Assembly: GCA_965637545.1 (NCBI GenBank)
Contig: OZ281496.1
Location: 28,148,001 to 28,212,000, forward strand
Origin: Phallusia mammillata
Lineage: Eukaryota
Length of the DNA: 64,000 nt
Reading direction: 5' to 3'
The notes beneath the pieces are model-generated. The model had not been told where the DNA came from and did not search any database. It worked only from the letters and a program-made list of their open reading frames with translations. The translations under genes and the position numbers were made by a program. Every line of letters begins with the position of its first letter. Positions within the stretch are counted from its first letter, which is position 1. Below are positions 32,549 through 60,677 of this stretch, in pieces.

Positions 32549-33925
32549 TTAAAACGGTCCGATGTTTACGTTGCTGTTGGTGACATTGAAAACATTTGAG
32601 CTGATTTCTCTTGCTATTTGACTCCAGTTGATGAAGAAACTGCCCTTAACTTTTTCCCGGAGTTCGGTTTCATTTCGTTCCTCATAAATCGTGTAGTCAA
32701 CAGGTTGGACATCATCTTCAATTGGTTCTTCACTTGACTTTACCAAAAACTGTCGCGAAAGAGCGTCGTCATCTCTCAAGTTTTCTTGACTGATGACTGC
32801 ATTTTCGGGACGAAAATCAACAGCGTAGTCGGACACAAAAACTAGTCTCAGATTGTATGTTGGGCTGTAAGAGAAAGTGTTCATCGATATACACAATGTT
32901 TCATTTGTGTGCAGTTGTCTGACTCGGTCAAATGAAGAACCGTCGCTTTCAGTTAAATACCAAATCACTTCAAACGCACGATTACTGACAACTTTTCTAA
33001 ATCCCAAGGATGTTATTTGCCAGCCCAATCTATCACCCGCTCTTTCTTCTTCTTCAATAGCAATAGCCCTGTCAGAAAAGTGGAGTGCTTTGTACACTAC
33101 TTTGCCATCTGTACCAAGGGTGGCATTGGATTCAAATTGCCATGGCGACTTGTCGTTTTGGCGAACAAAGATAGAAACTTTGACTGGTCGCTCTGCGTCG
33201 AGAGAAAAGTAGGCGCTTCGACCCTCAACCTGAAAGTGCTTTTCAAATATTGTGCCGCTTGGCTCGCAGCATAAAATAGGAGCAATGCAAAAGAATTCGG
33301 AACCGTTCCCCCCAAATCTTTTTATGCTAGGTTTAAGACTTACAATCACCTCAACTTCTTTCTGTGTGGGACAAGCTGGAAAATCGACTTTGTAATCACC
33401 AAGGCTGATGTTTGCTCCCTTAAAACCAATCCGTTGATTTACGAATTGTGGAGAATTAGGCAGGTTTGGTTTTGGGTTCGTAGGTTCCACAACATCATTG
33501 CTGATTAGTGGTTCAGTATGTTTTTCTTTGGTGAAAAGAAGTCTCATAGATTCCTGAAGACAATCACTAAACCAAATTCCTTTCAGAAGTTTACAACGTA
33601 CCACTTTGCTTAGCAAAGAGAAAAGTAGCAACAACCCAACAACCAACAACAACAGTTCCACCTCTGTATAAGCTACGTTCCAAGTATGATCCAAAGGCGG
33701 CGGTATGTCATCAGTTATAGGCGCTGCAGTTGACCTTTCGAATGGATGAAGATTTTCCAGCGCTTCATTGCTTTCTTGAATCTTGCTCAAAATATATTCT
33801 CTATTTACAGTTGATCTTTTGAATTTATGAAGATTTTCCAGTATCGCTTTACTGTTTTCACGAATCTGTTCTAAAGTATGTTTTCCATTTGCAGTTACTA
33901 TCATTATTGGCTGAATCGAAACCAT
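32549..33925 (-). CDS. Array paralogue A: ectodomain + TM + ZU5(HFS) + UPA-like + RHIM-like end, 458 aa
   Basis: Uninterrupted ORF; TM VELLLLVVGLLLLFSLL; ZU5 signature IAPILCCEPSGTIFEKHF; HFS at 33074-33082; terminal VFNVTNSNVNIG. An AG just upstream of the ATG allows an additional 5' exon. Confidence 0.85.
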   Translation of the reverse strand: MVSIQPIMIVTANGKHTLEQIRENSKAILENLHKFKRSTVNREYILSKIQESNEALENLHPFERSTAAPITDDIPPPLDHTWNVAYTEVELLLLVVGLLLLFSLLSKVVRCKLLKGIWFSDCLQESMRLLFTKEKHTEPLISNDVVEPTNPKPNLPNSPQFVNQRIGFKGANISLGDYKVDFPACPTQKEVEVIVSLKPSIKRFGGNGSEFFCIAPILCCEPSGTIFEKHFQVEGRSAYFSLDAERPVKVSIFVRQNDKSPWQFESNATLGTDGKVVYKALHFSDRAIAIEEEERAGDRLGWQITSLGFRKVVSNRAFEVIWYLTESDGSSFDRVRQLHTNETLCISMNTFSYSPTYNLRLVFVSDYAVDFRPENAVISQENLRDDDALSRQFLVKSSEEPIEDDVQPVDYTIYEERNETELREKVKGSFFINWSQIAREISSNVFNVTNSNVNIGPF

Positions 33926-34129
33926 TCTGGTCTGGAATCACAAACACCTGATCGTTTTTCAGACTATAACTTCACTTTATTTGTCGTTGCTTATTTCATC
34001 AACTAGATAAAGCTTCTATTTATTGCTTCAAAAATCAAACACTTTCACTTGCAGGAGGTCTAAACCGTATATGGCATTTGCAGACGAAACGGGTTATTAT
34101 TTTTCCAAGTAAGTCATAAAACCCAGGTG

Positions 34130-34215
34130 GATCCCCACTCGGTCAATTCTAAAGGTTGCCTGGTAACCCAAGGCATACACCCACAGATTGTTATCCTTCA
34201 GTGACTTAGAAAGGA
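34130..34215. promoter_or_regulatory. Conserved upstream element with RFX X-box, paralogue A
   Basis: GTTGCCTGGTAAC at 34155-34167, about 230 bp upstream of the ATG; homologous blocks at 37060-37145 and 45795-45890. Confidence 0.5.
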
Positions 34216-34251
34216 AAAGTTTCCTGTGTTTGCTGTTGCCAATAACTACAC

Positions 34252-34718
34252 CAGTGGTTCCCAACCTTTTTTGTTACATTCCACCCTTTGCCCATTTTCT
34301 TACTATTCATTCCTCCCCATAAGATGAAAAACAAATATAACATAAAAAATTTTAGCAATTTAAAATATCAGTTTATTTCACATTACTACTCAATGCGAAA
34401 TTTGCTCTCGCTTGCGCTCTGAAAGTAGTTGTAATGGCAGCACAGTTCTTTTTATACTACTCGTCTCTTTTAAATACTGGTAGTTGACTAAAACTTAGGC
34501 TACAACTAAAATCTACACAAACAATGATATGCAACAAAGAATCTAGTTTCATTACACATACTATTTACTAACTGTCGACTGTTCAGTTTTTAAGCAACTA
34601 AGCATCAGCCAGATTGCCAAAAACAAAAATGTTGAAACAATTGACTTTGTTATGACAATAATTAATTAAATAATTTAAGTGCCTGAAAGAGGAATTCCTC
34701 CCCGGTTGGGAACCACTG
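34252..34718. mobile_element. 467-bp hAT MITE between paralogues A and B
   Basis: TIRs CAGTGGTTCCCAACC / GGTTGGGAACCACTG; perfect TSD aactacac at 34244-34251 and 34719-34726. Confidence 0.92.
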
Positions 34719-34789
34719 AACTACACAAACGTTCTGGTGAATAACTTATGACGCCAACACCCTTTAATTCAATACCCTTTAATCCAATA

Positions 34790-35530
34790 CCCTTTAATTA
34801 GTGCATTTATGTAAGTACTTATCTAACTGCTACATTTGTCGCCTTAACATAATCATTTTGAACAGAACGTTGTATGTTTTCCCTCCTGTTTCTCAATAGT
34901 GGAACAGCGGACCTTGGCTATTAATCGTTTTGGGTATAATTTCCATCTAAACATTTGCAGAAAAGTTGTCAATCCTGGAGTTATGGTTTCAGTTTGTTTG
35001 TTTGTTTTCTTGATCATTTCGTTTATATGTGCATTTTCTTCAAATCCGTTTGCAGCGTTTTTGTCTGACATAAAACCATCGTGCTTTGGTATCTTTACAT
35101 TAAGAGTATAGATTTGTTTTAATATGTTATAGTTTACCCGTAATTTGTTGCCGTTTTGGCTATTGACACATTGTGCAAACCAAAGTAATACCCTTTGTTG
35201 TTTATCGCAGTAAAATAAAGCATAGGAACACTGTACAAGGATGTGTTTGTTTTGTGGTAAATCGGCTCTTACAAACGACCCAATTAAATGCTTTCGTGGT
35301 TCTTTGTGGAGAAAAAACCAATATTTCTTTTTTTAAAGCAAGGTCTTTTTCTTTCTAACTTTTGCCATGGCTCAACGCGCATGTAGAAAACATGTCTTCT
35401 GTCACTTTTATTCGACTTTTTACAGTCACAAATATGTACAAAAATCAACTTTAACAGCAATAAAATATACACAAAACTGTGCAACACAAATTTAGACAAA
35501 ACTCGATATTCATCTAAAGTGAAATAGCGC
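34790..35530. repeat. 3'-flank module of the ZU5 array, copy beside paralogue B
   Basis: Colinear with 31690-32420 and 40010-40730. Confidence 0.85.
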
Positions 35531-35678
35531 AAAAAGTTATTTCATAAAGGAACATTTTCTTTTAAATTCCCAAAAGAAACAAAAACAGTTGTTTAATGGT
35601 CAATATGCCCTAAAAACTACTCATTTGCCACTGTACACAAATTCAAGGCGAGGATATAATTAAACCAGGCACTTCCAC

Positions 35679-36839
35679 TTAAACCGCCCTGATGTTTATG
35701 TTGCTGTTGCTGACATTGAAAACATTTGAACTGATTTCTCTTGCTATTAGACTCCAGTTGATGTAGAAACTACCCGTTATTTTTTCTCGGCTTTCGGTTT
35801 CATTTCGTTCCTCATAAATCTTGTAGTCAATAGGTTGGACATCATCTTCAATTGCTTCTTCGCCTGACTTGACCAGAAACTGTCTCGAAAGAACGTCGTC
35901 ATCTCTCAAGTTTTGTTGACTGATAAGGGCATTATCAGGACGAAAAACAACATCGTGGGCGGGAAGAAAAACCAATCTCAGATTGCATCTTGTGCTGTAG
36001 GAGAAAGTGTTCATCGATATGCACAATGTTTCATTTGTGTGCAGTTGCCTGATTCGTTCGAATGAAGGACCGTTGCTTTCAGCTAAATACCATGTCACCT
36101 CAAGCGCGCGTTTGCCAACAGCTTTCCCGAATCCAAACGACGTTATTTGCCTGCCCAATCTATTACCCGCTCTTTCTTCTTCTTCAATAGCAATAGCCCT
36201 GTCAGAAAAGTGGTGTGCTTTGTACAGTACTTTGCCATCTGTACCAAGGGTGGTATTGGACTCCAATTGCCATGGCGATTTGTCGTTTTTGCGACCAAAG
36301 ATGGAGACTTTGACTGGTCGCTCTGCGTCGAGAGAAAAGTAGGCGCTTCTGCCCTCTACGTGAAAGTTCTTTTCAAAGCTTGTGCCGCTTGGCTCGCAGC
36401 ACAAGATAGGAGCAATGCAAAAGAATTCGGAACCGTCTACACAAAAATTTCGTATACTTGGCTTCAAACTGATGCCCGCCTCAATTTCTTTCTGTTTAGA
36501 ACAAGCAGGAAAATCGACTTTGTATTCACCAAGGCTGATGTTCGCTCTCTTCGAACCTATCAACTCATTTACGTGTAGGGAAGAATTAGGCGGATTAGGC
36601 TTTAAGTTCAAAAGTGCAGGCAAGGCATTTTCAACGTTATCTTTGCTGATGAGTCGTTCAGTTTTTTTCCCTCTTGTAAAGTATTTGAAATATTGTAGAA
36701 CACCAACAAGATAACAATCAAAAACAGAAGTCCAAAAAACAGACAGTACGTTGGACCTCAGCAGTAGACTCTGACGCTCTTTCCACGACGTTTTCCTTCT
36801 TATGCCACAGCCAAATTCTTCTGGGCATTTCAATTTCAA
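35679..36839 (-). CDS. Array paralogue B (close to A): ZU5(HFS) + UPA-like intact, 5' end unresolved; possibly a pseudogene
   Basis: 386-codon open frame strongly similar to A from FT.....TE.LIS onward; HFS at 36204-36212; no in-frame ATG ahead of the ZU5 region and a TGA two codons upstream of the ORF start; terminal motif NINIR instead of NVNIG. Confidence 0.6.
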   Translation of the reverse strand: MKLKCPEEFGCGIRRKTSWKERQSLLLRSNVLSVFWTSVFDCYLVGVLQYFKYFTRGKKTERLISKDNVENALPALLNLKPNPPNSSLHVNELIGSKRANISLGEYKVDFPACSKQKEIEAGISLKPSIRNFCVDGSEFFCIAPILCCEPSGTSFEKNFHVEGRSAYFSLDAERPVKVSIFGRKNDKSPWQLESNTTLGTDGKVLYKAHHFSDRAIAIEEEERAGNRLGRQITSFGFGKAVGKRALEVTWYLAESNGPSFERIRQLHTNETLCISMNTFSYSTRCNLRLVFLPAHDVVFRPDNALISQQNLRDDDVLSRQFLVKSGEEAIEDDVQPIDYKIYEERNETESREKITGSFYINWSLIAREISSNVFNVSNSNINIRAV

Positions 36840-37967
36840 TTTTCAAGTATTTTCTTGTATACGCCCATGACACCCGTCGCTACATTCTGGCTAGTCGCTG
36901 CAAGTAAAGATGTTCAGAGAAAGTATCCATATCTAACGAAGTGTTCATCGCCGTCTAAAGTTCAGACAGAATATTTAAACAGTGCGTCGTTTCTGAACCC
37001 GTCGATAAAATTCGCAAATGGCAACAGGTGTGTTTCTTTCTCTAGCTATAACCCCTTGTTAATCCCCCCACGGTCATTTTTGATGGTTGCTTAGTAACAG
37101 CAAACTCCCACCCACACATCGTTTTCCCTCAATGACTTAGAAAAGCAAAGGTAAAAGCGCCAGACGTCATTGCTCATGGAAGAATGAAGGTAAAAGCTTC
37201 AGACTCCTTTGTTTGTCATTGCTACTGCGGCTTAAATTCCTGCTAAATATAACGTCAGTATTTGAAATGTGTCGACTGGTACAGATTTATGATTTCTGCC
37301 GAATTTTTTTATTTCTCTTCTACCGTGCACAATTACCTATCAGTATTTATCTTTATGAATTTTTTTCATGGCTTAACGCGCATGTAGAAAACATTGTATT
37401 TTGTTACTTTTATTCGACTTTTTAAAATTACAAATACGTACAAAAAATCAACTTTAAAAGCAATAAAATATACACAAAACTGTACACCTAAAGTGAAAAT
37501 AACAAATTTTTTCATTAGGGAGCATTAAATTTTTCTTCACAAAGACCACACATAAAAAAAACTTCGTCTAAAGGCTCTAAAAATTCTTTCCATTCACTTG
37601 TTTACATATATGCACATTCGAAACTGCGTCAATTTGTCGTAGTTAAATGTAACGTCTCGGGGCGACACTAAAGGCACCAAGCGTGTGTATTCACTGCTGC
37701 CTTTAAACAGTGGAAACTTTCCGCCAAATGCATCATTGGAAAATGTCCCGTTAAGGGCTGTATGTTGTGTTTTGGTCCCATATTTTGTCAATTGTTTTAA
37801 CTTGTGACATTGATATACAGTAACGAATCCTGATTTTTAAAAAAATGCCCAGAAAGTTTGCACATAGAAGCATTAAAGACGCGGAAAAGATTGTCACATT
37901 TGTGCATTGTCATATTCTTGGTTTTCACAACCAGGTTCTTCTTCTCCAGTCGTTTCGTTCCCGTGCA

Positions 37968-39442
37968 TCAACACATGTCTCTCACATGCAGGTGATTGAC
38001 GTTACCAGTAATTGTAAGGCTTGGTTCTGGCTCGCGTGCGGCCCATGAAATGTAGAATCGACCGTCAACCATCGACTCATTTCCTTCAGACAACATTTGA
38101 TCAATTTTGTAAGTGATAGTTGAAAGTTGGCGTTCGGGATTTTCTAATTCAATAAGAAAGTTTGTGGGAAGGGACTGAAGGAGACGTAGACGGTTTGATG
38201 GGATTCCAACTTCATTTCGATCTAATTTTGTTTCTTCTCCTTGAAGTTTTAAAACAAGATTTTGATCAAGTCGAATCCTTATCGTCTCATAGGATATTGC
38301 TTTATTTAAATTCTCACATTGCCCTCGAATTCGATTGTAAGTTGCCTCGTCCATTCGATCAATGAGAAACCAAGTAAGATCTCGTGCATGCTGACCGAGT
38401 CGCCGTGTGTAACCAAAAGTAGCCATTTCTCTGCACACATTAGCTGCGTTCGAAACGTTGACAATAACTTCGCGATCAGAAAAATGATCAGCCTTGAAAA
38501 CAACATTCCCTTTGTTGTCTAGTGATGACGTCGATTCCACTTGCCAAGACGATTTCTCGTCATTTCTGACGTAAACCTTCACAGGGACTGATTGAGATTC
38601 GTTCAACGCGAAGAAGCTGCTTTGTAATGTAACTGTAAAAGGTTTGAGGAACTGTATACCGGATGGTTCGCATCTAAGCCAGGGAGCAATTCGGAAGTCG
38701 TTTTTGCTCTGGACACTGTCGTATCGACCGACTGAGAATTTGAGAAACCTTTTGTGACTTACTGCTCCTTCAGGAAAGCAAAGTTTGTAGCATCCGACTT
38801 GAGCCGTCCCACCGTCGAATCCCAAGCACAATGTGTGTTTGCCTTCATGACTTGTGGAACCAAAGAGTTTTTGCTGATTTAAAATTTTTAGGACTAATAG
38901 TTTCTTCCGAGTTTTTGCACTGTCGTCCAATCGCAATGAGATAGAACTAGTGTTAGATGATTCTATGCGAAGAGCGAAAATGAGATATGCTATAACCAAA
39001 TGGATTACAACCAACAGAATTATCAGAACTAAAGTGATAATTGAGGTCAAACTCCAAAAAGGAATAAGCTCCTTATCTGATCCGCTGGTGGCAGTGGCGG
39101 CGATGGTGGTGGTTGGTTTGGGGGTGATTGCAGTGGTAGGGGTGGTGTTGGGAGTGTCGTACAATGTAGTTGAATTTATCTAAACACATACCGTCAGTAA
39201 GTTTTTCAATCAAACAATCTGTCACTTTTACATCATAAAAATTTCAAAAATTTCAAAATCTTGTTTTTGCGATGTTACAAATATTACCAGGTTTATTATG
39301 TTTTAGAAAACAGTAAAAAGATTACAGATCTGGACAATGTGTAGCCAGCAGCTTACTTACATTTATTCTACCTTGCAAAAACGAGTCAACAAAATCTTAC
39401 CGTAGTGCCCTCGAAAGTTCTCGTTGTAAACGCAAAGTCCAT
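37968..39442 (-). CDS. Array paralogue C: Thr/Pro-rich ectodomain + TM + ZU5(HFS) + UPA-like; C-terminal tail frameshifted
   Basis: Main exon 39179-37968 with acceptor gtgtttag; upstream exon 39442-39401 (MDFAFTTRTFEGTT, donor gtaaga, phase 0), which may extend further 5'. HFS at 38478-38486. Ends HLHVRDMC* because of a 2-nt insertion relative to paralogues D and G. Confidence 0.8.
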
Positions 39443-40009
39443 AATGTCAGGGGATTGTACAGAGACTGGTAAAGGCAATCCACAAACGTACAGTGTACTG
39501 GAACGAAATTTATCCTCATTGGTTTTAAAACTTCAAAGACCAAATAAAAACAAAACTTTATGATAGGCTTTATGTTTTGAAACTTAGCACAAAAAATAAC
39601 TCCACTAAAGTGTTACGGCTAGGCTGACATTAATGTATCCTACAATCATCATTTTAATCGTATAGGACATTACCTATCTGGTGCAATTCAAAACCTTCCT
39701 TCGCTTTTGTTTTGTTTTGAAATAACAGTGTATTATTGTCTAAATTATTAATGATGCAACTTGTGTTAGGTCGCTAAAGCGTAAAACAGTTTCTCATAAC
39801 TGTTCAAAAACCTACATTAAATAACTTTAGAAATTGTTTAAACCTGTTTCACTACTTGACCTCAAAAAAAGTTCTCTTGTGTTGTGCTACGAAAACAAAG
39901 TTTTGGGCAGCGACTGTCGTCCCTAAACGAATACCCTGGGAATAACCTGGCAAACTTTTTTGAGAGTAACAGTCGGCGCCATGGTTAATAGAAAAAGGTA
40001 TATATTAGC

Positions 40010-40730
40010 CGGCATTTATTTGATTACTTATCTGGCTCCCACATTTATTTGCGGAACATAATCGTTTTAAACATACCGTTGTATGTTTTTTTTAACTCTT
40101 TTGTATCCCATCAGAAACAACAGACCTTGACTAGTAATCTTTTTGGTTAAAATTTCTATTTCTATCCAATCATTTGTGGAAAAGTTGTCAATGCTGGAGT
40201 TAAGGTTTCAACGTGTTTTTTATTATTTCGTTTATACGTGTATTTTCTTCAAAACCGTTCACAGCGTGTTGCTTGGCTGAAAACCATCGTGTTTTGGTAT
40301 CTCTACATTAAGAGTATGCGTATGTTTTAATATGATGTATTTCTCCCGTAACTTGTTGCCTTTCTGGCGATTGGCACATTGTGCAAAGCAAAGTAATACC
40401 CTTTGTTGTTTATCGCAGTAAAATAAAGCATAGGAACACTACACAAAGATTGGCTTTGTAGTGAATCAGTTCTTACAAACGACACAACGAAATTAAATGC
40501 TTTTGTGGTTCTCTGTGGAGAACAAACCAATCTTTTTTTCAAACCTAAGTTTCTTTCTAACTTTTTGCCATGGGTCAACGCGCATGTAGAAAACATGTCT
40601 TTTGCTACTTTTATTCGACTTTTTTTACAATCACTAATACGCACAAAAACCAACTTTAATAGCACTAAAATATACACAAAACTGTACAACACAAATTCAA
40701 ACAAAATGCGCAATCACCTATAAAGTAAAA
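40010..40730. repeat. 3'-flank module of the ZU5 array, copy beside paralogue D
   Basis: Very similar to 31690-32420 over about 700 bp by eye. Confidence 0.85.
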
Positions 40731-41110
40731 AATATCACCCAATTTTTTTGTTTATTTTCACATGAGTCATACCATGAAATCAAATGTTGTCTAAAGGCTC
40801 TACAAATTCTTTCCATTTACATATTTACACAAAATTCGAAATTGTGTCAATTTGTCGTGGTTGAATGTAACGTCTCGGGGCGACCCTAAAGGCACCAGGC
40901 GTATTTGTTCATTGCTGCCTTTAAATATAGTGCCAAATTTCCGCCAAATGTATCATTGGAAAATGTCCCGTTAAGGGCTGTGTGGTGTTTTGGTCCTATA
41001 TTTTGTCAATTGTTTAAACTTGCAACGTTGATATACAATAACGAATCCTGATTAAAAAAAACTGCTCAGAAAGTTTCCACATAGAAGCATTAAAGACGCG
41101 AAAAAGATTG

Positions 41111-42660
41111 TCACATTTGTGCATTGTCATATCCTTGGAACCAGGTTGTTTCTGAACCAGGTTGTTCTTCTCCAGTCGCTTCGTTCACATGCACCAACAC
41201 ATCTCCAACATGCAAGTGATTGACGTTACCAGTGATTGTACGGTTTGGTTCTGGCTCGCGTGCGGCCCATGAGATGTAGAATCGACCGTCAACCATCGAC
41301 TCATTTCCTTCAGGTAGTCTTTGATCAATTTCGTAAGTAAAAGTTGAAAGTTGGCGTTCAGAATTTTCTAATTCGAGCAAAAATTTTGTGGGAAGGGACT
41401 GAAGGAGACGTAGACGGTTTGAAGAAATTTCAATCTCATTTCGATCTAATTTTGTTTCTTCTCCTTGAAGTTTTAAAACAAGATTTTGATCAAGTCGAAT
41501 CCTCAATGTCTCATAAGGGATTGCCTCGTCTGAATTCTCATTTTGCTCGCGAATTCGATTGTAGGTTGCCTCATCCATTCGATCAATAAGAAACCAGGTG
41601 AGATCTCGTGCATGTTGACCGAATGACCGCGTAAAACCAAACGTAGCCATTTCTCTGCCCACTATAGGTGCGTTTGAAACGTCAAAAACCTCTTCGCGAT
41701 CAGAAAAATGATCAGCCTTAAAAACTACATTCCCTTTGTTGTCTAGTGATGACGTCGATTCCAGTTGCCAAGGTGATTTCTCGTCATTTCTGACGTAAAC
41801 CTTTACAGGGACCGATTGAGATTCATTCAACGCAAAGAAACTGCTTTGCAGTGTAACTGTGAATGGTTTGAGGAACTTTATACCGGATGGTTCGCATCTA
41901 AGCCAGGGAGCAATTCGGAAGTCGTTTTTGCTCTGGTCGCTGTCGTATGGACCGACTGAGAATTTGAGAGAGGTTTTTGTGACTTACTGCTCCTTCAGGA
42001 AAGCATAGTTTGTAGCAGCCGACTTGAACCGTCCCACCGTCTAAGCCCAAACAGAGTGTCTGTTTGCCTTCGTGACTTGTTGTCACGTCGCCATGTGATA
42101 CTTCTATAAGTACGTTGTGATTTTATGCGCAAAACTGAATGGGAACGACTTAAAAACAAGACGATTACTAGAATTGAGAGACATAAAGCGATAAAGATCG
42201 AAGTCAAGATTGTAACAAGCTCATTATCTGGTTCGTAGGGGGCGACGTCGTTGGTGGTTGGATTGGAGGTGAGAGTGAATGTTGGGCTGGGGTTCGAGTT
42301 AATGCTGGTGGTAGGGGTGATGTTGAGGGTGTTGTACACTGTAGTTGAATTTATCTAAACATATACCTTTCGTAAGTTTCTAATATCACACAACCGTTCA
42401 ATTTTTACATTTTAAAAACATCAACTTGTTGTTATATTTTTGGTTTTCTCATCCTGTCCACGAACGGGAGTTTCGTAGGCTGAATATAACAGCCAGCGTT
42501 TTGCCATTCGCTACACTCATGAAACTCTAAAGACCGAGACAATGTGCAGCTAGCAGCTATAATTAGGCCTACATTTGTTCTAACCTGCAAAAACATTTTA
42601 ACAAAATCTTATCGTAGTTGCCTCGAAGGTTTTGTGGCTTGTTAATACAATTACATTCAT
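41111..42660 (-). pseudogene. Array paralogue D: full-length but disrupted
   Basis: Three ORF pieces in different frames (41995-42339 with TM, 41898-42086, 41111-41830). One frameshift lies just after the TM, a +1 lies in the A-run near 41975, and the donor of exon 42660-42613 is changed from GT to AT. HFS at 41702-41710 and NHLHVG retained. Confidence 0.85.
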
Positions 42661-43993
42661 AATGCCAAAGGATTGTATAGAGACTGGTAACGGTAATCCA
42701 CAAGCCTACGGTGTATACTAAAAAAGAAATCTATCTTGTTTTATCATCAAACTTTAAAGACCAACACTGTAAAATAAAATAAAACATAACTTTACATGAG
42801 GCTTTGTATTACATCTTAGTATGAAAAAATAACTCCAGTAATGTGTAACGGCTATAGGCTGGCTTGGATGTATCTTACAATCATCATTCAGTCGTATGGG
42901 ACATTTCCTATCTGGTGCAATTGAGAACCTTTCCTTCGCTTTTGTTTTGTTATGAAACAACATTGTATTAATAATAATACCACTTTTCTTGGGTCGCTAA
43001 AGCGAAGAAAAACATTTAATAACTTTAGAAATTGTTTAAACCGGTTTCACTATTAAACCTTAACGAAATTTGCTTGAAGACAAAGTTATGGGCAGCGACT
43101 GTCGTCCCTCAACGAATAACCTGCGAATTTCACAACAAAATTGTTTTGGAAATTACAGTAGGCGCCATTGTTACGTCGTTTTTGTCAACTGTTGTGAACA
43201 TAACTTTGTCCAGCAACACGTATAACAATTGTCCTGTGACGCAACAGTTGGTGTTTCATTCACTGTAAATCGGGATCCCACCCAGGGGGTGCAGACTGTT
43301 AACGTTTCTGTCAACTTTGTTTTATTAAAAAATGATTCTCTAAAACTTTTTTTGTTCACCCACTGTATTGCGCACGTACTAACCACAAACGTGGGACAAT
43401 AACCCGACAATTGTGTCCGAGTGTTTTCTTTATCACTAGTTTGACTCTCCCAAAAACTTTGGCAAGTTGAATGTTAACTATAAAAAAACCACAACAACAA
43501 GCACTGTGCGACAACTTGGCTGTGTTTATAGTAGGCCATCCAGTAATTGAACAGTGTCAGTGTTGATTTAAAAAAATCCGGACCCCAAAATCCATTGTTG
43601 CGAACAATGAAATGAAATTAAATGCTTTTGTGGTTCTCTCTGGAGAACAAACCAAACTTTTTTTCAAAGCAAAGTCTTTCTCTTTCTGACTTAGTTGCCA
43701 AGGCTCAACGCGCATGCAGAAAACATGTCTTTTGTTACTTTTATTAGTTTTAACAGTCACTAATACGCATAAAAATCAACTTTAAAAGCACTAAAATATA
43801 CACAAAACTGTACAACACAAATTCAAACAAAACGCGCAATCACCTAAAGTAAAAATATCACTCAAATTTTTATTAAGGAGCATTTAGCTTTCCTTCACAA
43901 AAAATAGTGAGTGAAAGTAACGTCCCGAGCGACCCTAAATGCCTCAGGCGCCATTGTTCACTGCTTTCAAATAGCGCCTCAGGCGCCATTGTT

Positions 43994-44777
43994 AATACCG
44001 GATGGTTCGCATCTAAGCCAGGGAGCAATTCGGAAGTCGTTTTTGCTTTTGTCGCTGTCGTATGGACCGACTGAGAATTTGAGAGAGGTTTTGTGACTTA
44101 CTGCTCCTTCAGGAAAGCATAGTTTGTAGCAGCCGACTTGAACCGTCCCACCGTCTAAGCCCAAACAGAGTGTCTGTCTGCCTTCGTGACTTGTTGTCAC
44201 GTCGCCATGTGATACTTCTATAAGTACGTTGTGATTTTATGCGCAAAACTGAATGGGAACGACTTAAAAACAAGACGATTACTAGAATTGAGAGACATAA
44301 AGCGATAAAGATCGAAGTCAAGATTGTAACAAGCTCATTATCTGGTTCGTAGGGGGCGACATCGTTGGTGGTTGGATTGGAGGTGAGAGTGAATGTTGGG
44401 CTGGGGTTCGAGTTAATGCTGGTGGTAGGGGTGATGTTGAGGGTGTTGTACACTGTAGTTGAATTTATCTGAACATATACCTTTCGTAAGTTTCTAATAT
44501 CACACAACCTTTCAATTTTTACATTTTAAAAACATCAACTTGTTGTTATATTTTTAGTTTTCTCATCCTGTCCACGAACGGGAGTTTCGTAGGCTGAATA
44601 TAACAGCCAGCGTTTTGCCATTCGCTACACTTATGAAACTCTAATTTAGACCGAGACAATGTGCAGCTAGCAGCTATAATTAGGCCTACATTTGTTCTAA
44701 CCTGCAAAAACGTTTTAACAAAATCTTACCGTAGTTGCCTCGAAGGTTTTGTGGCTTGTTAATACAATTACATTCAT
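43994..44777 (-). pseudogene. Array paralogue F: recent duplicate of D truncated inside ZU5; may still encode a 135-aa TM peptide
   Basis: 43995-45290 is near-identical to 41880-43150. Exon 44777-44730 with intact gtaaga donor plus exon 44468-44109 give ectodomain + TM + short tail. ZU5 homology stops at CEPSGI (about 43995). Confidence 0.85.
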
Positions 44778-46791
44778 AATGCCAAAGGATTGTATAGAGA
44801 CTGGTAACGGTAATCCACAAGCCTACGGTGTATACTAAAAAAGAAATCTATCTTGTTTTATCAAAACTTTAAAGACCAACACTGTAAAATAAAAAAAAAC
44901 ATAACTTTACCTAAGGCTTTGTATTACATCTTAGTATGAAAAATAACTCCAGTAATGTGTAACGGCTATAGGCTGACTTGGATGTATCTTACAATCATCA
45001 TAGTCGTATGGGACATTTCCTATCTGGTGCAATTGAGAACCTTTCCTTCGCTTTTGTTTTGTTTTGAAACAACATTTTATAAATAATAATACCACTTTTC
45101 TTGGGTCGCTAAAACGTAGAAAAACATTCAATAACTTTAGAAATTGTTTAAACCGGTTTCACTATAAAACCTCAACGAAATTTGCTTTACTTTGTGCTAC
45201 GAAAACCAAGTTATGGGCAGCGACTGTCGCCCCTCAACGAATACCCTGGGAATTTCACAAAAAACTTTTTTGGAAGTTACAGTCGGCGCCATGGTAAAAA
45301 AAAAAATTCAGTCGCCCATACCCTCCAAACCTAACCAATTAAGGTTTTATAGCGCGCCTAAACAAACGTAATAAAGCGCTGAAAAACGTTGCCCGCTTTT
45401 TCAGCCGAATCAATTGTTACAAACGACACAATACATTTAACTGCCTTTGTGGTTCTTCAGGTGTACAAGAACATGTTTCAGCGTTGTCGTTTTTTTAAAG
45501 TACTTTGTTTGTCACTTTTTATTTCATCAGCACGATAAAGCTTTTAACTTATAGCTTTTGGTTTGTCATAATTGAGTTCACTCGCATTAACAGCATAAGG
45601 TCCAGTTGAAAACATCCATATAGCAACGGGTATTTTAGGTTCGGCCTGACCGACCGAGATTTTTTGGCCTCATGGCCGAATATTTGGTTTCAGCCCGAAC
45701 CATTTTAGGCGGGTTCTGTGCATCACTAGTTTAAACCGTATATGACATTTGCACACGAAACAGCTTATTTGTTTCCAAGTACGTTATTAAACGGTAAATC
45801 CCCACACGGTCAATTCTAAACGTTGCCTGGCAACCTCAAGACAGACGCCCACACATGTTATCCCTAATTCAGTGACATTGCAACGAAAAATTTAACTGTA
45901 AACCAATCTGTGTTTGCCGTTCCCAATATCTCACGCTACAACGCGATGGAAAAAGCCGAACATTGCTGGCAATTTTTTAGATTAAAATTTTATATCTGCA
46001 AAACAATATTTTAAGACACCGCTTAAATGAATGAATGAAATACGTTTTGTACTTGCTGGTCTATTTACGTCTTTTTGTATTTACGATATTTACACATGAA
46101 CTACTAACGTACATAGACTGATATTAATCCACTCTGTGTTTGTTAAGTTAGGGTTTGTACCCTAGCTGATTCCGTCCTTTACGCATTGTTCCTCAGCCGA
46201 ACCCCAATTCATAAGAATTGGTGCTTTATTCAGATTTTTTATGAACAGTTTCTGGACCAAATCAAACCAAATCCGGTTTTACACAAAAATTAAACTCGTC
46301 AGTTAAAAGATTTGTTTCTTAAAGCACAATATAGGCCATACCCTAGTAAAATTGCTTACCTGTGCTAAAACAACGGTACTGAACACGCTATATACGCAGT
46401 TTCGTTGTAGTTGACCTTTAGTAGAAATTCTATAGTTTCAACACGTAATGGTACTTCCCTTATTTTTCTGCTGTGGTTGTAGGGTGGGTTGTTTTCAGTG
46501 AAGCAAATCACCGTAGCATTTGTCTACTGGAGTGAATGCCATTTCAAGAATGATGATGTGTATAACGAACCGGTTAAGAAGTGGGAAAAGTTAGGCTTTG
46601 TTGTAGCAGTGATGATATACGAACCGCTATTTTAACGAATACTCTTTTAAATCTTTATTAGATTAAAAGCAAAGTTTTATAGTGTTTTTATTTTTAAAAT
46701 AGATGCTTAAGATTTTTTGAGAAAGTCACATTTTTAAAAATTACTATGTTACTGCAGAACATTAAACAATATTTACAATTAGTATTCCCTG

Positions 46792-48135
46792 GTGTATCAC
46801 TGTACTGCTAATTCAACGCCATTTGAGATGGAGGACAAACAATTCGCCGACATGTTTAAGAGAACGAAAGCATCTTTGCCAGCTTCGACTACAGTTTCGG
46901 TTGTTCAGTCCGAAGGCGCTTCTTATGACGAAGGCCACTTTGTTTATCCAATAGCAATAGTTGCATTGGCCTGTATTGCCATAATTGTTGCATCGTTTGC
47001 ATTGTGGATATTTCGGATCAAACCGTCCAAACCTTTACCGAACTTATTTTCACCACGTTCGAGTTCGTACTACGGGGCAAAGTGTTATGGCTCAATGGTA
47101 TCGGAACGGGCAAGGGCCCTGAAATTTAGCCCTTTTAAGTCCAAATCGCCACAAAACTTCGAAAACAATAAACGCTCTACTGACAGAGTGACAGACCGAT
47201 GGTCTCGGAAACTCGATATCTCCTTAAACAGGAATGGAAGCGATTTTACACTCGGATGCTATTGTTTGTCATTTCCAAAAGGCTCAGTTGACAAAGATGT
47301 AGATTTGAGTTTTTCCGTCGAATCCTTTAACGATGACACAGAACACAAAAAGGAAATACGGATCGCTCCGCGTCTTAGATGCGAACCATGCGGCATAAAG
47401 TTCACCAAACCATTTACAGTTATACTGCAGAGTAGTTTCTTTGCGTTAAACAAATCTCAATCAGTCTCTGTAAAGGTTTACGTCAGAAATGACAAAAAAT
47501 CGCCTTGGCAACTTGAATCGACGTCATCACTAGACAACAAAGGGAAGGTAGTTTTCAAGGCTGATCATTTTTCTGATCGCGAAGTTATTGTCAGCGTTTC
47601 CAACGCACCTATTGTGGGCAGAGAAATGGCCACGTTTGGTTTTACGCGGTCATTCGGTCAACATGCACGTGATCTCACCTGGTTTCTCATTGATCGAAAC
47701 GACGAGGCAACCTACAATCGAATTCGCGGGCAATATGAGAATTCAGATGAAGCAATACCCTATGAGACAATGAGGATTAGGCTTGATCAAAATCTCGTTT
47801 TAAAACTTCAAGGAGAAGAAACAAAATTAGACCGAAATGAAGTTGAAATCTCATCAAACCGTCTACGTCTTCTTCAGGCCTTTCCCACAAAATTTCTGCT
47901 TCAATTAGAAAATTCTGAACGCCAACTTTCAACTGTCACTTACGAAATTGATCAAATGTTGTCTGAAGGAAATGAGTCGATGGTTGACGGTCGATTCTAC
48001 ATTTCTTGGACAACACCAGAACCTCCGGAACCAAACCTTACCATTACTGGTAACGTCAATCACTTGCACGTGGGAGATGTGTTGAGGCATGTGAACGAAA
48101 CGACTGAAGAAGGACCTGGTTCGGAGGAAAATTGA
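46792..48135 (+). CDS. Array paralogue G (inverted orientation): ectodomain + TM + ZU5(HFS) + UPA-like + RHIM-like, about 435-447 aa
   Basis: Uninterrupted ORF; first ATG at 46828, in-frame acceptor at 46781-46782 suggests an upstream exon; TM FVYPIAIVALACIAIIVASFALWIF; HFS at 47566-47574; LTITGNVNHLHVG at 48037-48075. Confidence 0.85.
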   Translation: MYHCTANSTPFEMEDKQFADMFKRTKASLPASTTVSVVQSEGASYDEGHFVYPIAIVALACIAIIVASFALWIFRIKPSKPLPNLFSPRSSSYYGAKCYGSMVSERARALKFSPFKSKSPQNFENNKRSTDRVTDRWSRKLDISLNRNGSDFTLGCYCLSFPKGSVDKDVDLSFSVESFNDDTEHKKEIRIAPRLRCEPCGIKFTKPFTVILQSSFFALNKSQSVSVKVYVRNDKKSPWQLESTSSLDNKGKVVFKADHFSDREVIVSVSNAPIVGREMATFGFTRSFGQHARDLTWFLIDRNDEATYNRIRGQYENSDEAIPYETMRIRLDQNLVLKLQGEETKLDRNEVEISSNRLRLLQAFPTKFLLQLENSERQLSTVTYEIDQMLSEGNESMVDGRFYISWTTPEPPEPNLTITGNVNHLHVGDVLRHVNETTEEGPGSEEN

Positions 48136-48725
48136 CCTTAAAAAGGGGAATACACAATTATGATAATATTGTGTTGTGTCGTTTGTACCAGTAAAAGCAC
48201 CGTCCATGTCAGTCGGGACTATCGATAACATACATATGTATATTTAGCCACGCATCCATAACGCGGAGTATAAGAAGTTATTTGGTATTCTATAGCCAAA
48301 CCAAAAGGCAAGTCAAAATTCAGTTATTGGGAATAGTCTTTGGAAATCGGCTTTTGGCTAACAGTTAATTGCTTATCGAGCAGGAATATAAAGCCATATG
48401 TGCTTATACTGAACTCTTATTTGTCAACATAATAATAATTGATTTCGAATTAAATGCTATGAGTGTCAAGAAACTAGACCGTTTGATTTGTCGACCGAAT
48501 CTCGCAGTTTGTTTCGCTTTTTGTCGCAAACTGCAGTCCCGTCGGTGATTACCCGGGGGATTCACCCAAAAGTTTTTTCCAGACATTTTTGTGTAGGCGT
48601 AAGGTTAATACATAGAACTTTGAATAAACGAAAAGAATAGGCTATGCCTTCTGATAACATTCCCATGATACCATTAAATGCTACAAAACACTGCAAAAGA
48701 AGTATTATAATACAAAATCATTACA

Positions 48726-48948
48726 ATGTAAAAACATATAGAGCCAATAAATGATAAGCTGCAGACAGTGCACACTGTTTCGACCTATAAGGTCTCATCA
48801 GTGCAGCTGGTGACGAGAGATCGGCCGCCTTGGCTAGTGTAGCCATTCAACGGCACTCCAGTTTGTTGGGAGCACAGGGTACAACCCCATGCATCACCTA
48901 GTCTGTGCGATGCCACAACTCGAAACAGTGTGCACTGTCTGCAGCTTA
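48726..48948 (-). mobile_element. 223-bp Penelope-like/retrozyme-type insertion with inverted terminal segment
   Basis: 14-bp direct repeat acaaaatcattaca at 48712-48725 and 48949-48962; perfect 29-bp inverted repeat at 48755-48783 and 48920-48948; contains a hammerhead ribozyme. Confidence 0.7.
48756..48808 (-). ncRNA. Type I hammerhead ribozyme
   Basis: Minus strand reads AGCTGCA-CTGATGA-GACC(TTATA)GGTC-GAA-ACAGT(GTGC)ACTGT-C-TGCAGCT: complete core, stems I, II and III all pair, GUC cleavage triplet. Confidence 0.9.
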
Positions 48949-49368
48949 ACAAAATCATTACATTTGGGAATATATCAACTATTTAATTTGCTAGAAGATA
49001 AACACAATGTTACCCTCGTTTTAGCATAATTTGTAGCACTTATCCTTAATATTTTGTGACGTTTTAAAGTTATAATAGGCATGTAAAAGACTCCATAAAA
49101 AACGAGAACAACAGACATTTTAGTCCGGCTAACAAAGTTTCGTCGCAAACCTTATTTAGCCGTTCGCTTCACCTCACTCAGTAAACACAAAAGCCTTGAT
49201 GGCGCAATATCGTCACGGGCCGATACGCAAACACTCCTTCGTATAACTTTTCAGCACACCTTGAGACGGGCGGTCGAAGTACAGCAGAGTCACAATCGTT
49301 AAAGAAACGTTCCTAATAAAGTAAAACAGTGCAGTTTTATGTTGTGTTTGAGGTAATCTTAAGCAAAG

Positions 49369-50889
49369 ATGGAACACAATCTTTCAGTTTTGGAAAGGTG
49401 TAAAAATTGCACTGCTAATGAAACCAATATAACTGCTGTTGTGCCGAATGGAAAGAATGATGTCAATTTTCCTTGGCTTCCTGTTGTTTATGTAGTCCCA
49501 GTGGTTACTATTATCGCATTTCTGTATCTCTTGCTACGGCGGTATTATACTAAGTTGCGTCGGGCTGTTCAGCAGCCTCTCGCCTTGACAGTTCAACCTT
49601 GCTATCAGTCAAACGCTAAAGAATCTTGCCTTAAAGCTCCAACTGCTTTGCAGAAGGTTCAAGAGCAAGGCGTCAAAGTGATTTTATCAGATATTTCAGA
49701 AACAAGAAATACTCTAAAACCGGTTTCGACCTCAACAGAAAACGCTAAAATCTTGAGTATAACTCTGGGGCCTAAAGGTGAAACTGTACGAAAGGGTTGT
49801 TACACTCTAATATTTCCTCCTGGTGCATTGGACAAAAATACTGATGTTGAAATCTCAGTCTTGGAAAATGAGGACAGCACTATATCAGGGCATTTCAGAA
49901 TCGCCCCTGTGTTACGATGCGAACCTAGCGGATTATCGTTCAAAAAACCGTTTCAAGTTGTTGTTGAAAGCAGGTTTTTCGCCTGGACCTCAGACAAACT
50001 TGTTGCAGCTAAAGTTTCGGTGCGGGAAAACGCATTTTTGCCTTGGGAAGACGAGTCAACTACTTTGCTAGGTCATGACGGAAAGGCTGCGTTTTCGGCT
50101 ACGCATTTTTCAGGTCGATCTATCGACTGCAACCTAGAGGACCGGAGTGATGTAGGAAGGGATATGTGCACTTTTGGATATTTGTCTGTTTTGGATCATC
50201 AAGCCACGGAGCTTACTTGGTACGTTTTAGACAAACAAAGTAATGATGACTATGAACGTATCTGTAAGCGTCACATCAAGGACAGTGATGCAGTTTCATA
50301 CCAAGTTATGAAGGTTAACTTAGATTACAGGCTGAAATTAACGTTGACCTCAAACAGCAGTGTAAATTTGGAGCCAAAAGTGGAATTTATTGAAAGCTGG
50401 GATCTTTGCAGTCTAAACACAAGATCAAAGAAATTTTTGCTAGAACTGGGTGATGAATATGTTAAAAGGTCAACAGTGAAATACAATGTTAAACACCAAA
50501 CAATAAGAATGGACATGCTTGAGTACGGCGACACGGGCAATACGATTGCGCAAGGCCGATTCTTTGTTCAGTGGGGTTTGGCTCGTAGCGAATCTCAAAC
50601 TAGCCTTCAATTCGTCGGAGGAACACAAAATCTAAGTCTGGGGAACAACGGCACAACTAGTTTCAGTTCGTTTTCGGAAAGCTCCCAAAACTCACAAAGC
50701 AATTTAAGTTTACCATTGGCCGAGCAGTCAGTGCAAAACGAGGACATTCGTGGTTTACCAGCTGCGCGGGCTCAACTTCCTTCCACACCAAACGACAGTC
50801 GCGCATCGACCTTAAACAGGCCTGCGATCCAATCTCCAATGGCCTTTAACCAATCAGCAAACGATTTGGTGTTTTTTAAGGTTGTTTGA
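49369..50889 (+). CDS. Array paralogue H (most divergent): N-glycosylated ectodomain + TM + ZU5(HFS) + UPA-like + RHIM-like + Ser/Gln/Pro tail, 506 aa
   Basis: ATG-to-stop ORF; sequons NLS, NCT, NET, NIT before TM WLPVVYVVPVVTIIAFLYLLL; ZU5 LGPKG...LIFPPGAL...IAPVLRCEPSGLSFKKPF; THFS at 50101-50112; LQFVGGTQNLSLGNN at 50605-50649. Confidence 0.88.
   Translation: MEHNLSVLERCKNCTANETNITAVVPNGKNDVNFPWLPVVYVVPVVTIIAFLYLLLRRYYTKLRRAVQQPLALTVQPCYQSNAKESCLKAPTALQKVQEQGVKVILSDISETRNTLKPVSTSTENAKILSITLGPKGETVRKGCYTLIFPPGALDKNTDVEISVLENEDSTISGHFRIAPVLRCEPSGLSFKKPFQVVVESRFFAWTSDKLVAAKVSVRENAFLPWEDESTTLLGHDGKAAFSATHFSGRSIDCNLEDRSDVGRDMCTFGYLSVLDHQATELTWYVLDKQSNDDYERICKRHIKDSDAVSYQVMKVNLDYRLKLTLTSNSSVNLEPKVEFIESWDLCSLNTRSKKFLLELGDEYVKRSTVKYNVKHQTIRMDMLEYGDTGNTIAQGRFFVQWGLARSESQTSLQFVGGTQNLSLGNNGTTSFSSFSESSQNSQSNLSLPLAEQSVQNEDIRGLPAARAQLPSTPNDSRASTLNRPAIQSPMAFNQSANDLVFFKVV

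Positions 50890-51337: not shown

Positions 51338-60677
<9,340 letters not shown>

Follow-up and report, generated by a model that had tools for sequence, protein, structure and literature searches.

Gene content of the locus

The genome of the ascidian Phallusia mammillata (GenBank assembly GCA_965637545.1, contig OZ281496.1) carries, between positions 28,148,001 and 28,212,000 of the forward strand, a cluster of related genes whose products combine a transmembrane (TM) helix, a ZU5-UPA domain, and a tail. Here, we will refer to this whole stretch of 64,000 nucleotides, which contains no N, as the window, and all positions are given within it. Our subject is a short peptide motif in the tail, rich in aliphatic residues, Asn, and Gly, which lies just past the end of the UPA domain and which may be a signaling element resembling the RHIM amyloid motif.

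Searching the window by tblastn with paralogues A, G, and H returned seven copies in total, one of which (E) is an N-terminal fragment at 43979-44507 (Table 1). Paralogues A, C, G, and H each consist of one long open reading frame (ORF) encoding a short N-terminal part, one TM helix, a basic stretch, the ZU5-UPA domain, and the tail. The N-terminal part contains N-x-S/T sites in H and C, and we consider the tail to be cytosolic, from the positive-inside rule and the ZU5-UPA context.

Table 1. Paralogues of the TM-ZU5-UPA-tail cluster and their tail motifs (positions in the window).
Feature	Position	Strand	Motif sequence	Description
Paralogue A	32549-33925	-		458-aa single ORF: N-terminal part, TM helix, ZU5(HFS)-UPA, 24-aa tail
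A tail motif	32558-32593	-	VFNVTNSNVNIG	Core VNIG; followed by PF and stop
Paralogue B	35679-36839	-		386-aa ORF; alignable to A from residue 106 onward; degenerate-looking TM segment
B tail motif	35688-35723	-	VFNVSNSNINIR	Arg replaces final Gly; core NIR
Paralogue C	37968-39164	-		398 aa; 2-nt insertion directly 3' of motif causes a frameshift and a premature end of the ORF
C tail motif	37980-38018	-	LTITGNVNHLHVR	Arg replaces final Gly; core HVR
Paralogue D	41111-41830	-		C-terminal 239 aa in one frame; TM part at 41995-42339 in another frame (frameshift or short intron)
D tail motif	41204-41242	-	RTITGNVNHLHVG, read (R)TITGNVNHLHVG	Core LHVG
Fragment copy E	43979-44507	-		TM part and ZU5 start only (ORF and tblastn); tail motif absent
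Paralogue G	46792-48135	+		447-aa ORF, first ATG ~46828: TM, ZU5(HFS)-UPA, tail
G tail motif	48037-48075	+	LTITGNVNHLHVG	Core LHVG; within X25 contig 47957-48126, no joint
Paralogue H	49369-50889	+		506 aa: TM helix 37-67, ZU5-UPA core 124-401, 105-aa disordered tail
H tail motif	50605-50649	+	LQFVGGTQNLSLGNN	Residues 413-427; core LSLG
H second tail motif	50743-50775	+	DIRGLPAARAQ	Residues 459-469; absent from the short-tailed A-G

The ratio of non-synonymous to synonymous substitution rates (dN/dS) is 0.36 for B versus A and 0.19 for D versus G. Taken over whole genes it lies at 0.19-0.43, with dS of 0.3-0.8, which indicates that the copies are old and mostly under purifying selection. Not all of them are intact. 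The TM-encoding ORFs of D and E (the latter at 44109-44507, minus strand) encode an identical 114 residues, each out of frame with the ZU5 part that follows, which a frameshift common to both or a short intron could explain; in E, nothing is found downstream of the early ZU5.

A hidden death-domain exon, reached through a splice donor past the motif, was considered and rejected, since the ORFs of A, B, and C end 2-3 codons past the motif without a usable donor, and a contig from a probable RNA run (X25) is colinear with G through motif and stop.

The motif and the ZU5-UPA fold

Translation of the window reproduced the peptides of A and D (minus strand) and of G and H (plus strand) at the coordinates originally claimed for them, which confirms that the motif itself is real. 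The original prediction had also placed it directly after the conserved end of a UPA-like domain, and this was borne out: the motif starts 6-10 residues past G-x-F-[FY]-[IV]-x-W, the last strand of the ZU5-UPA core in AlphaFold2 models. Its composition is one of alternating aliphatic residues, Asn, and Gly, with neither Pro nor charge. The description of the motif as C-terminal suits A, where two residues and a stop follow, but not H, where ~80 residues follow it; in G and D the number is ~20-30.

Pfam sees the ZU5 domain weakly (E 4.4e-5 in H). In the AlphaFold2 model of H, which was built on a 39-sequence alignment, the TM helix precedes an all-beta core with a per-residue confidence (pLDDT) >90, the fold ends at W402, and the motif is coil, with pLDDT falling from ~68 to ~44. 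The model of A has its core at residues 160-433 at high pLDDT, with the fold ending at W433; a short helix follows (434-442), and the motif, at 444-458, is coil at pLDDT<50. A Foldseek search with the H model matched the ankyrin-B ZU5-ZU5-UPA-death domain (DD) region at 1.9e-12, the cytoplasmic domain of UNC5b at 1.3e-11, and the FIIND of rat NLRP1 at 7e-7; the matched structures include 4d8o, 3g5b, and 7crw.

ZU5-UPA proteins usually end in a death domain or CARD right after UPA. Neither domain gave a Pfam match in the window proteins or their tails. As both AlphaFold2 models leave the motif as coil, it lies outside the predicted fold, in the slot usually held by a death-fold domain, and the models thereby support the view of the tail motif as a disordered peptide in the death-domain/CARD slot of ZU5-UPA. 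At the ZU5/UPA junction, between two strands of the model, the tripeptide H-F-S is found without variation in each of the six copies where this region is preserved. This is the location of the self-cleavage site (before Ser) in PIDD, UNC5CL, and FIIND-type modules.

Conservation within the family

When H was used as the query of a word search, a single protein (P0001, 46% identical) was retrieved, and a profile search of 1.84 billion representatives (a library that excludes the window's own proteins) gave 62 matches, 8 of them strong. The named family matches all come from tunicates (Clavelina lepadiformis, Styela clava, and P. mammillata), so that the TM-ZU5-UPA-tail architecture, as judged by these searches, appears to be a tunicate-specific family.

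Further family members (P0002-P0005, P0085) were seen in ENA metagenome assemblies (L002-L004) on contigs up to 36 kb. Because two different members lie on equally long contigs (34,049), there is probably a tandem arrangement in another tunicate, whose DNA was present in those metagenome samples.

In the family alignment, the same motif columns hold SLQFVGGTQNLSLG in H, NVNINGSNCVNIG in P0001, LTITGNVNHLHVG in G, VFNVTNSNVNIG in A, and NYNIQSQSTHMIVG in Clavelina P0006, and more distant members have SIIFGDTVHHYHS, NITCGDTVNHYYS, and SIYVGDQVSNHYYN. The original prediction had spoken of three distinct motifs with one core for each subfamily. Since the cores of A, G, and H fall in the same columns, they are better regarded as one diverged motif than as three independent ones. 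The assignment of a core to each subfamily is also weakened and does not hold strictly, as P0001, the closest relative of H, carries the VNIG of A.

What is conserved is a pattern of aliphatic and Gly positions rather than the exact letters. The hydrophobic and Gly pattern is common to H and P0001 despite differing polar positions, and across A, P0001, G, and H the two hydrophobic pairs are joined by a loop of 4 to 6 residues. Over the 11 codons for TITGNVNHLHV, a comparison of C, D, and G shows five synonymous and no non-synonymous differences, which supports purifying selection on the motif within subfamilies. In B and C, Arg replaces the final Gly. It is more likely that these two are genes in decay than that they are designed inhibitors, because each is damaged elsewhere too (B has lost its TM segment and C has a frameshift).

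Long-tailed members have a second motif, represented in H by DIRGLPAARAQ, with the counterparts REIRGRPASRY, ELIERRPATRA, and EYIVTLPASRV among P0001, P0003, P0004, P0006, and P0028. At 40% pairwise identity, against 19% in the flanking tail, this region is better conserved than the RHIM-like motif.

Resemblance to RHIM and cRHIM

A RHIM is defined as a segment of 18-20 residues with the core (V/I)-Q-(V/I/L/C)-G (PMC13506858). This tetrad is present in no copy of the motif, as Gln is absent from VNIG, LHVG, LSLG, NIR, and HVR alike. A deep mutational scan of RIPK1 and RIPK3 identified the key RHIM residues as i, i+2, i+8, and i+10, together with a Gly at both i+7 and i+11 (10.64898/2026.02.19.706818). 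The spacing i, i+2, i+8, i+10 with Gly at i+11 is exact in P0001 (VNINGSNCVNIG); the loop is one residue short in A and one residue long in G and H. As in RHIMs, the motif lies within an unstructured region flanking a folded domain (coil at pLDDT<50-68 in the models of H and A).

The cRHIM definition is more permissive, with only the fourth-position Gly fixed, and its published examples include LHFG of fly IMD and VHIG of shrimp IMD (PMC10268257). A core of this kind (V/I/L-x-x-G) is present in A, D, G, and H and not in B and C, where Arg stands in the last position. Because the definition fixes only the Gly, such a match carries little weight; for orientation, translating the window in six frames yields 404 matches to [VI]xxG.

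Readings of the peptide as a pLxIS motif, a TRAF6-type motif, or an N-glycosylation site were dropped by eye, as these are not conserved across the copies and the tail is regarded as cytosolic.

Similar tails on other ascidian ZU5-UPA proteins

The weaker profile matches are ascidian ZU5-UPA proteins (from Styela, Phallusia, and Clavelina) with varied heads, namely NACHT (P0012), BTB-BACK-Kelch (P0017, P0042), UBA (P0014), LRR (P0056), SH2 (P0018), and kinase (P0022, P0039, P0031). None of them has a death fold, and all end soon past UPA in tails rich in N, T, G, V, and I. One echinoderm match retains ZU5-UPA-Death. The three kinases, all from P. mammillata and two of them annotated as RIPK1-like, have the order kinase-ZU5-UPA-short tail, which differs from the kinase-RHIM-DD arrangement of vertebrates, and they are candidate downstream partners for such tails.

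A match outside the family concerns A, whose NVFNVTNSNVNI resembles NTFNITGSNVNI in P0041 and NIYNINGCNVNI in Styela clava P0033 at an equal distance from the UPA end. In 1000 of 1000 trials this match exceeded the maximum over 16 shuffled tails (p<0.001), and the ZU5-UPA domains of A and these two proteins are only 18-28% identical. A hidden Markov model built from five family motifs, when run against other ZU5 proteins, had the P0041 tail as its best match, but only at an independent E-value of 0.33. The pairing of A-type motifs across proteins is seen with P0033 and P0041 only, as cross-species matches, with no other instance in the window; word searches with the A tail region, and with the UPA end and tail of P0033, retrieved no further proteins. 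In the same 16-tail shuffle test, neither the G-type nor the H-type motif significantly matched any protein beyond the family. Taken as a whole, we consider that this context favours a homotypic signaling tail.

Expression and neighboring features

In the X25 run, contigs extend over 46761-48126 and span the G ORF through motif and stop, with no joints and with uncovered flanks, and G is therefore probably transcribed, the RNA label of the run being a guess. The same run leaves H uncovered and covers a neighboring exon from 51349. This exon (51338-51622, plus strand), on which contigs of RNA-like runs begin at 51349, encodes the start of a flavoprotein resembling glutathione or thioredoxin reductase (VIGGGSGG...GGTCV).

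Between G and H, a short repeat at 48724-48954 is covered very deeply by each of the four RNA-like runs, and joints of the "goes back" and "skips 93" kinds occur there. A scan of the region for Hammerhead_1 gave no match at the gathering score; a full-length, sub-threshold hit lies at 48758-48807 on the minus strand (22.8 bits, where the gathering score is 34; E 0.004). The repeat looks like an expressed retrozyme-type element.

Interpretation and alternative explanations

We tentatively prefer, at somewhat less than even confidence, the explanation that a short disordered interaction motif has been appended, in ascidians, to a ZU5-UPA module of the autoproteolysis type where a death domain or CARD would otherwise stand, and that the tails polymerize in a RHIM-like manner and recruit matching tails. 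Under this reading, the motif is a functional analogue of RHIM or cRHIM, and descent from RHIM is not claimed. The protein would be anchored in the membrane with ZU5-UPA and tail in the cytosol, and activation would release or cluster the UPA-tail part, on the model of PIDD, UNC5CL, NLRP1, and CARD8. Clustering driven by UPA would raise the local concentration of tails, which could then stack as beta-strands with the aliphatic residues facing inward, the Asn residues forming ladders, and Gly at the turns. The resulting RHIM-like polymer may recruit matching tails on other ZU5-UPA proteins, e.g., kinases or NACHT proteins. In this model, self-cleavage at H-F-S, assembly into a polymer or amyloid, the choice of partners, and any part played in immunity are inferred.

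A number of results weigh against this explanation and should be set out together. The RHIM profile PF12721, proposed earlier as a check, had no match in the proteins (E<=1), in their tails (E<=10), or in the tails of the other ascidian ZU5-UPA proteins, in searches that had no positive control and in which HMMER's filters drop most matches above E ~0.1. A profile of ten family motifs run against 177,635 PDB sequences (E<=10) found no RHIM or HET-s chain; across the PDB sequence searches with the P0001 tail and with the motif profile, the best matches were designed beta-propellers at E ~0.3. No match was obtained by hhalign between an alignment of A-type motifs and three published RHIM peptides, and an ESM Atlas feature search with H residues 400-440 gave no usable match. 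Local alignment to the three reference peptides, which were taken from papers (M45 and the 12-mers of RIP1 and RIP3), gave p values against composition-preserving shuffles of 0.02-0.05 for A and 0.08-0.16 for G, which fail multiple testing. For H and P0001, p was ~0.04 for the best single-peptide score and 0.06-0.28 for the three scores summed, distant family members showed no signal in this test, and 0.25-3% of 19-mers from unrelated proteins score as high. The most RHIM-like tail is that of P0033, and its match to RIP3 NIYNCSGVQVG (p ~0.003 uncorrected) is borderline after correction for 23 tails.

The distant kin replace the second half of the motif by His/Tyr-rich strings and end in Ser or Asn, not Gly, and family-wide pairwise identity is 23% in the motif, compared with 40% in ZU5, 31% in UPA, and 18-19% in the flanking tail. 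Motif discovery by expectation maximization reached z 4.8 on all 23 tails, largely from seven related family members; on the 16 non-family tails alone it reached z 0.97, nothing beyond composition, with a matrix that misses the window motifs. A universal ascidian tail motif is thus unsupported. A perfect VQVG (GGTVQVGCYKL) occurs in the first strands of the folded ZU5 of D and E, at ~42029 and ~44143 on the minus strand, and such a chance occurrence indicates that tetrad-type matches are cheap. H was not seen in the small RNA-like runs, which, their RNA label being a guess, is uninformative either way.

Where does this leave the resemblance? The disordered site, the composition, and the closeness of LHVG to LHFG and VHIG speak for the RHIM/cRHIM-like character that had been proposed, but the Gln tetrad and any Pfam, PDB-profile, or hhalign signal are missing. 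With no Gln, no profile signal, marginal shuffle p values, and a loose cRHIM criterion, membership in the RHIM family is not established; the likeness is only suggestive at the level of sequence. The motif itself is real, and it is a plausible analogue of RHIM.

Several other explanations should be considered. The tail could carry an ordinary short linear docking motif, e.g., a strand added to the sheet of a folded adaptor or enzyme, with one-to-one recruitment and no polymer. We regard this as rather unlikely, though it has points in its favor: the tail is disordered and short and is conserved as a pattern rather than an exact sequence, long-tailed members have in DIRGLPAAR a second and better conserved element, as is typical of tails with multiple docking motifs, and the link to RHIM is not statistically secure. 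An A-type peptide on ZU5-UPA proteins with quite different heads, however, suits association of like with like better, the peptide occupies the slot of a homotypic polymerizing domain (DD or CARD), and the Asn ladder, the alternating Val and Ile, the Gly, and the freedom from charge and Pro are typical of beta-arch stacking motifs. That the peptide is instead part of the folded UPA, as a last strand or hairpin, is a reading that we reject as having very little chance of being right. It draws on the 6-10 residues that separate the motif from the last UPA strand; against it, the modeled fold ends at W402 or W433 with the motif as low-confidence coil in both proteins, and the solved ZU5-UPA structures in the Foldseek alignments stop short of the peptide.

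The remaining explanations are both improbable in our view. A true RHIM, diverged by descent from a chordate ancestor and moved onto tunicate ZU5-UPA, would overlap with the polymerizing-tail explanation. It could appeal to the NIYN-x(2-3)-G...V-N-I of P0033, which resembles the RIP3 peptide and belongs to a protein linked to A, to the RHIM hydrophobic spacing of P0001, to the likeness of LHVG to published cRHIM cores, and to the many amphioxus RHIM proteins with immune-type architectures (PMC4262963). Yet the tetrad Gln is missing in every copy, profile methods are silent, the loop varies in length, the terminal Gly is not family-wide, and short Asn/Gly/aliphatic peptides converge easily. Marginally less probable still is a chance resemblance, in which the motif is a low-complexity, Asn-rich remnant of death-domain loss with little or no function. 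A motif barely more conserved than its flanks, non-family tails that share composition and no motif, tetrad-like matches arising by chance even inside ZU5, and the tolerance of Gly to Arg in B and C, with a frameshift directly past the motif in C, would all fit. A remnant of this kind would not be expected to show a 5:0 excess of synonymous over non-synonymous changes in the motif of C, D, and G, a motif shared by A, P0033, and P0041 at 18-28% domain identity, or the pattern kept between H and P0001, and B and C are otherwise decaying copies.

If the explanation of polymerizing tails is taken further, the tunicate set of ZU5-UPA proteins (membrane receptors, NACHT proteins, RIPK1-like kinases, BTB-Kelch, and SH2 proteins) might have had its death folds replaced by amyloid-forming tails, whose variants (A-type NVFNVTNSNVNIG, G-type LTITGNVNHLHVG, and H-type) would be address codes wiring sensors to kinases. 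Such a chordate counterpart of fungal and bacterial amyloid signaling, released by UPA self-cleavage, is a speculative extension that we hold to be doubtful.

Relation to known signaling systems

The self-cleaving ZU5-UPA scaffold drives the NLRP1 and CARD8 inflammasomes and the PIDDosome. If the tails polymerize, a chordate lineage would have swapped death-fold for amyloid-type signaling on this same scaffold, and the cluster, with its three natural variants and two Gly-to-Arg variants, would offer a compact system for the study of polymer specificity. It would also fill a reported gap in RHIM-type signaling: according to Kajava et al. (PMC4262963), tunicates appear to be without RHIMs, and the RHIMs of amphioxus occupy places more usual for CARD-like domains, and a 2025 survey found no tunicate RIPK1 homologue with both RHIM and DD (PMC12119088). 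Our literature search found no paper describing tunicate ZU5-UPA proteins with such tails. If the tails do not polymerize, there is still a tunicate-specific TM-ZU5-UPA-tail family with a conserved post-UPA peptide.

With UNC5CL, PIDD1, and the FIIND of NLRP1 and CARD8, the window proteins share the ZU5-UPA fold (Foldseek 1e-11 to 7e-7), the H-F-S at the junction, and the placement of a signaling element right after UPA. UNC5CL also has its membrane anchor N-terminal of ZU5, as the window proteins do. The window proteins differ in having a disordered Asn/Gly/aliphatic peptide of 12-16 residues and no DD or CARD, and self-cleavage is putative here.

Like the mammalian and viral RHIMs (RIPK1, RIPK3, TRIF, ZBP1, and M45), the motif is short, Asn-rich, and set in disorder, with two aliphatic pairs around a polar/Gly loop and a Gly end, and it stands in a death-fold slot, as in the amphioxus RHIM proteins (PMC4262963). 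It is unlike them in its absence of Gln, its variable loop length, its lack of profile-level similarity, and its protein context. The arthropod cRHIMs (PGRP-LC/LE, IMD, and shrimp SRB2) have in common with it a loose four-residue core ending in Gly and a place in the cytoplasmic part of a membrane receptor, although the hosts here are tunicate TM-ZU5-UPA proteins with no PGRP, IMD, or SRB context.

Finally, the fungal and bacterial amyloid motifs (HET-s, PP, sigma, and BASS) should be considered. In the window the motif is C-terminal to ZU5-UPA, and the matches are between species, with no sensor/effector pair from a single genome. In both cases, however, a short motif stands in for a death-fold-type adaptor, similar tails occur on sensor (NACHT, LRR) and enzyme (kinase) heads, and variants of the motif could encode the specificity of pairing.

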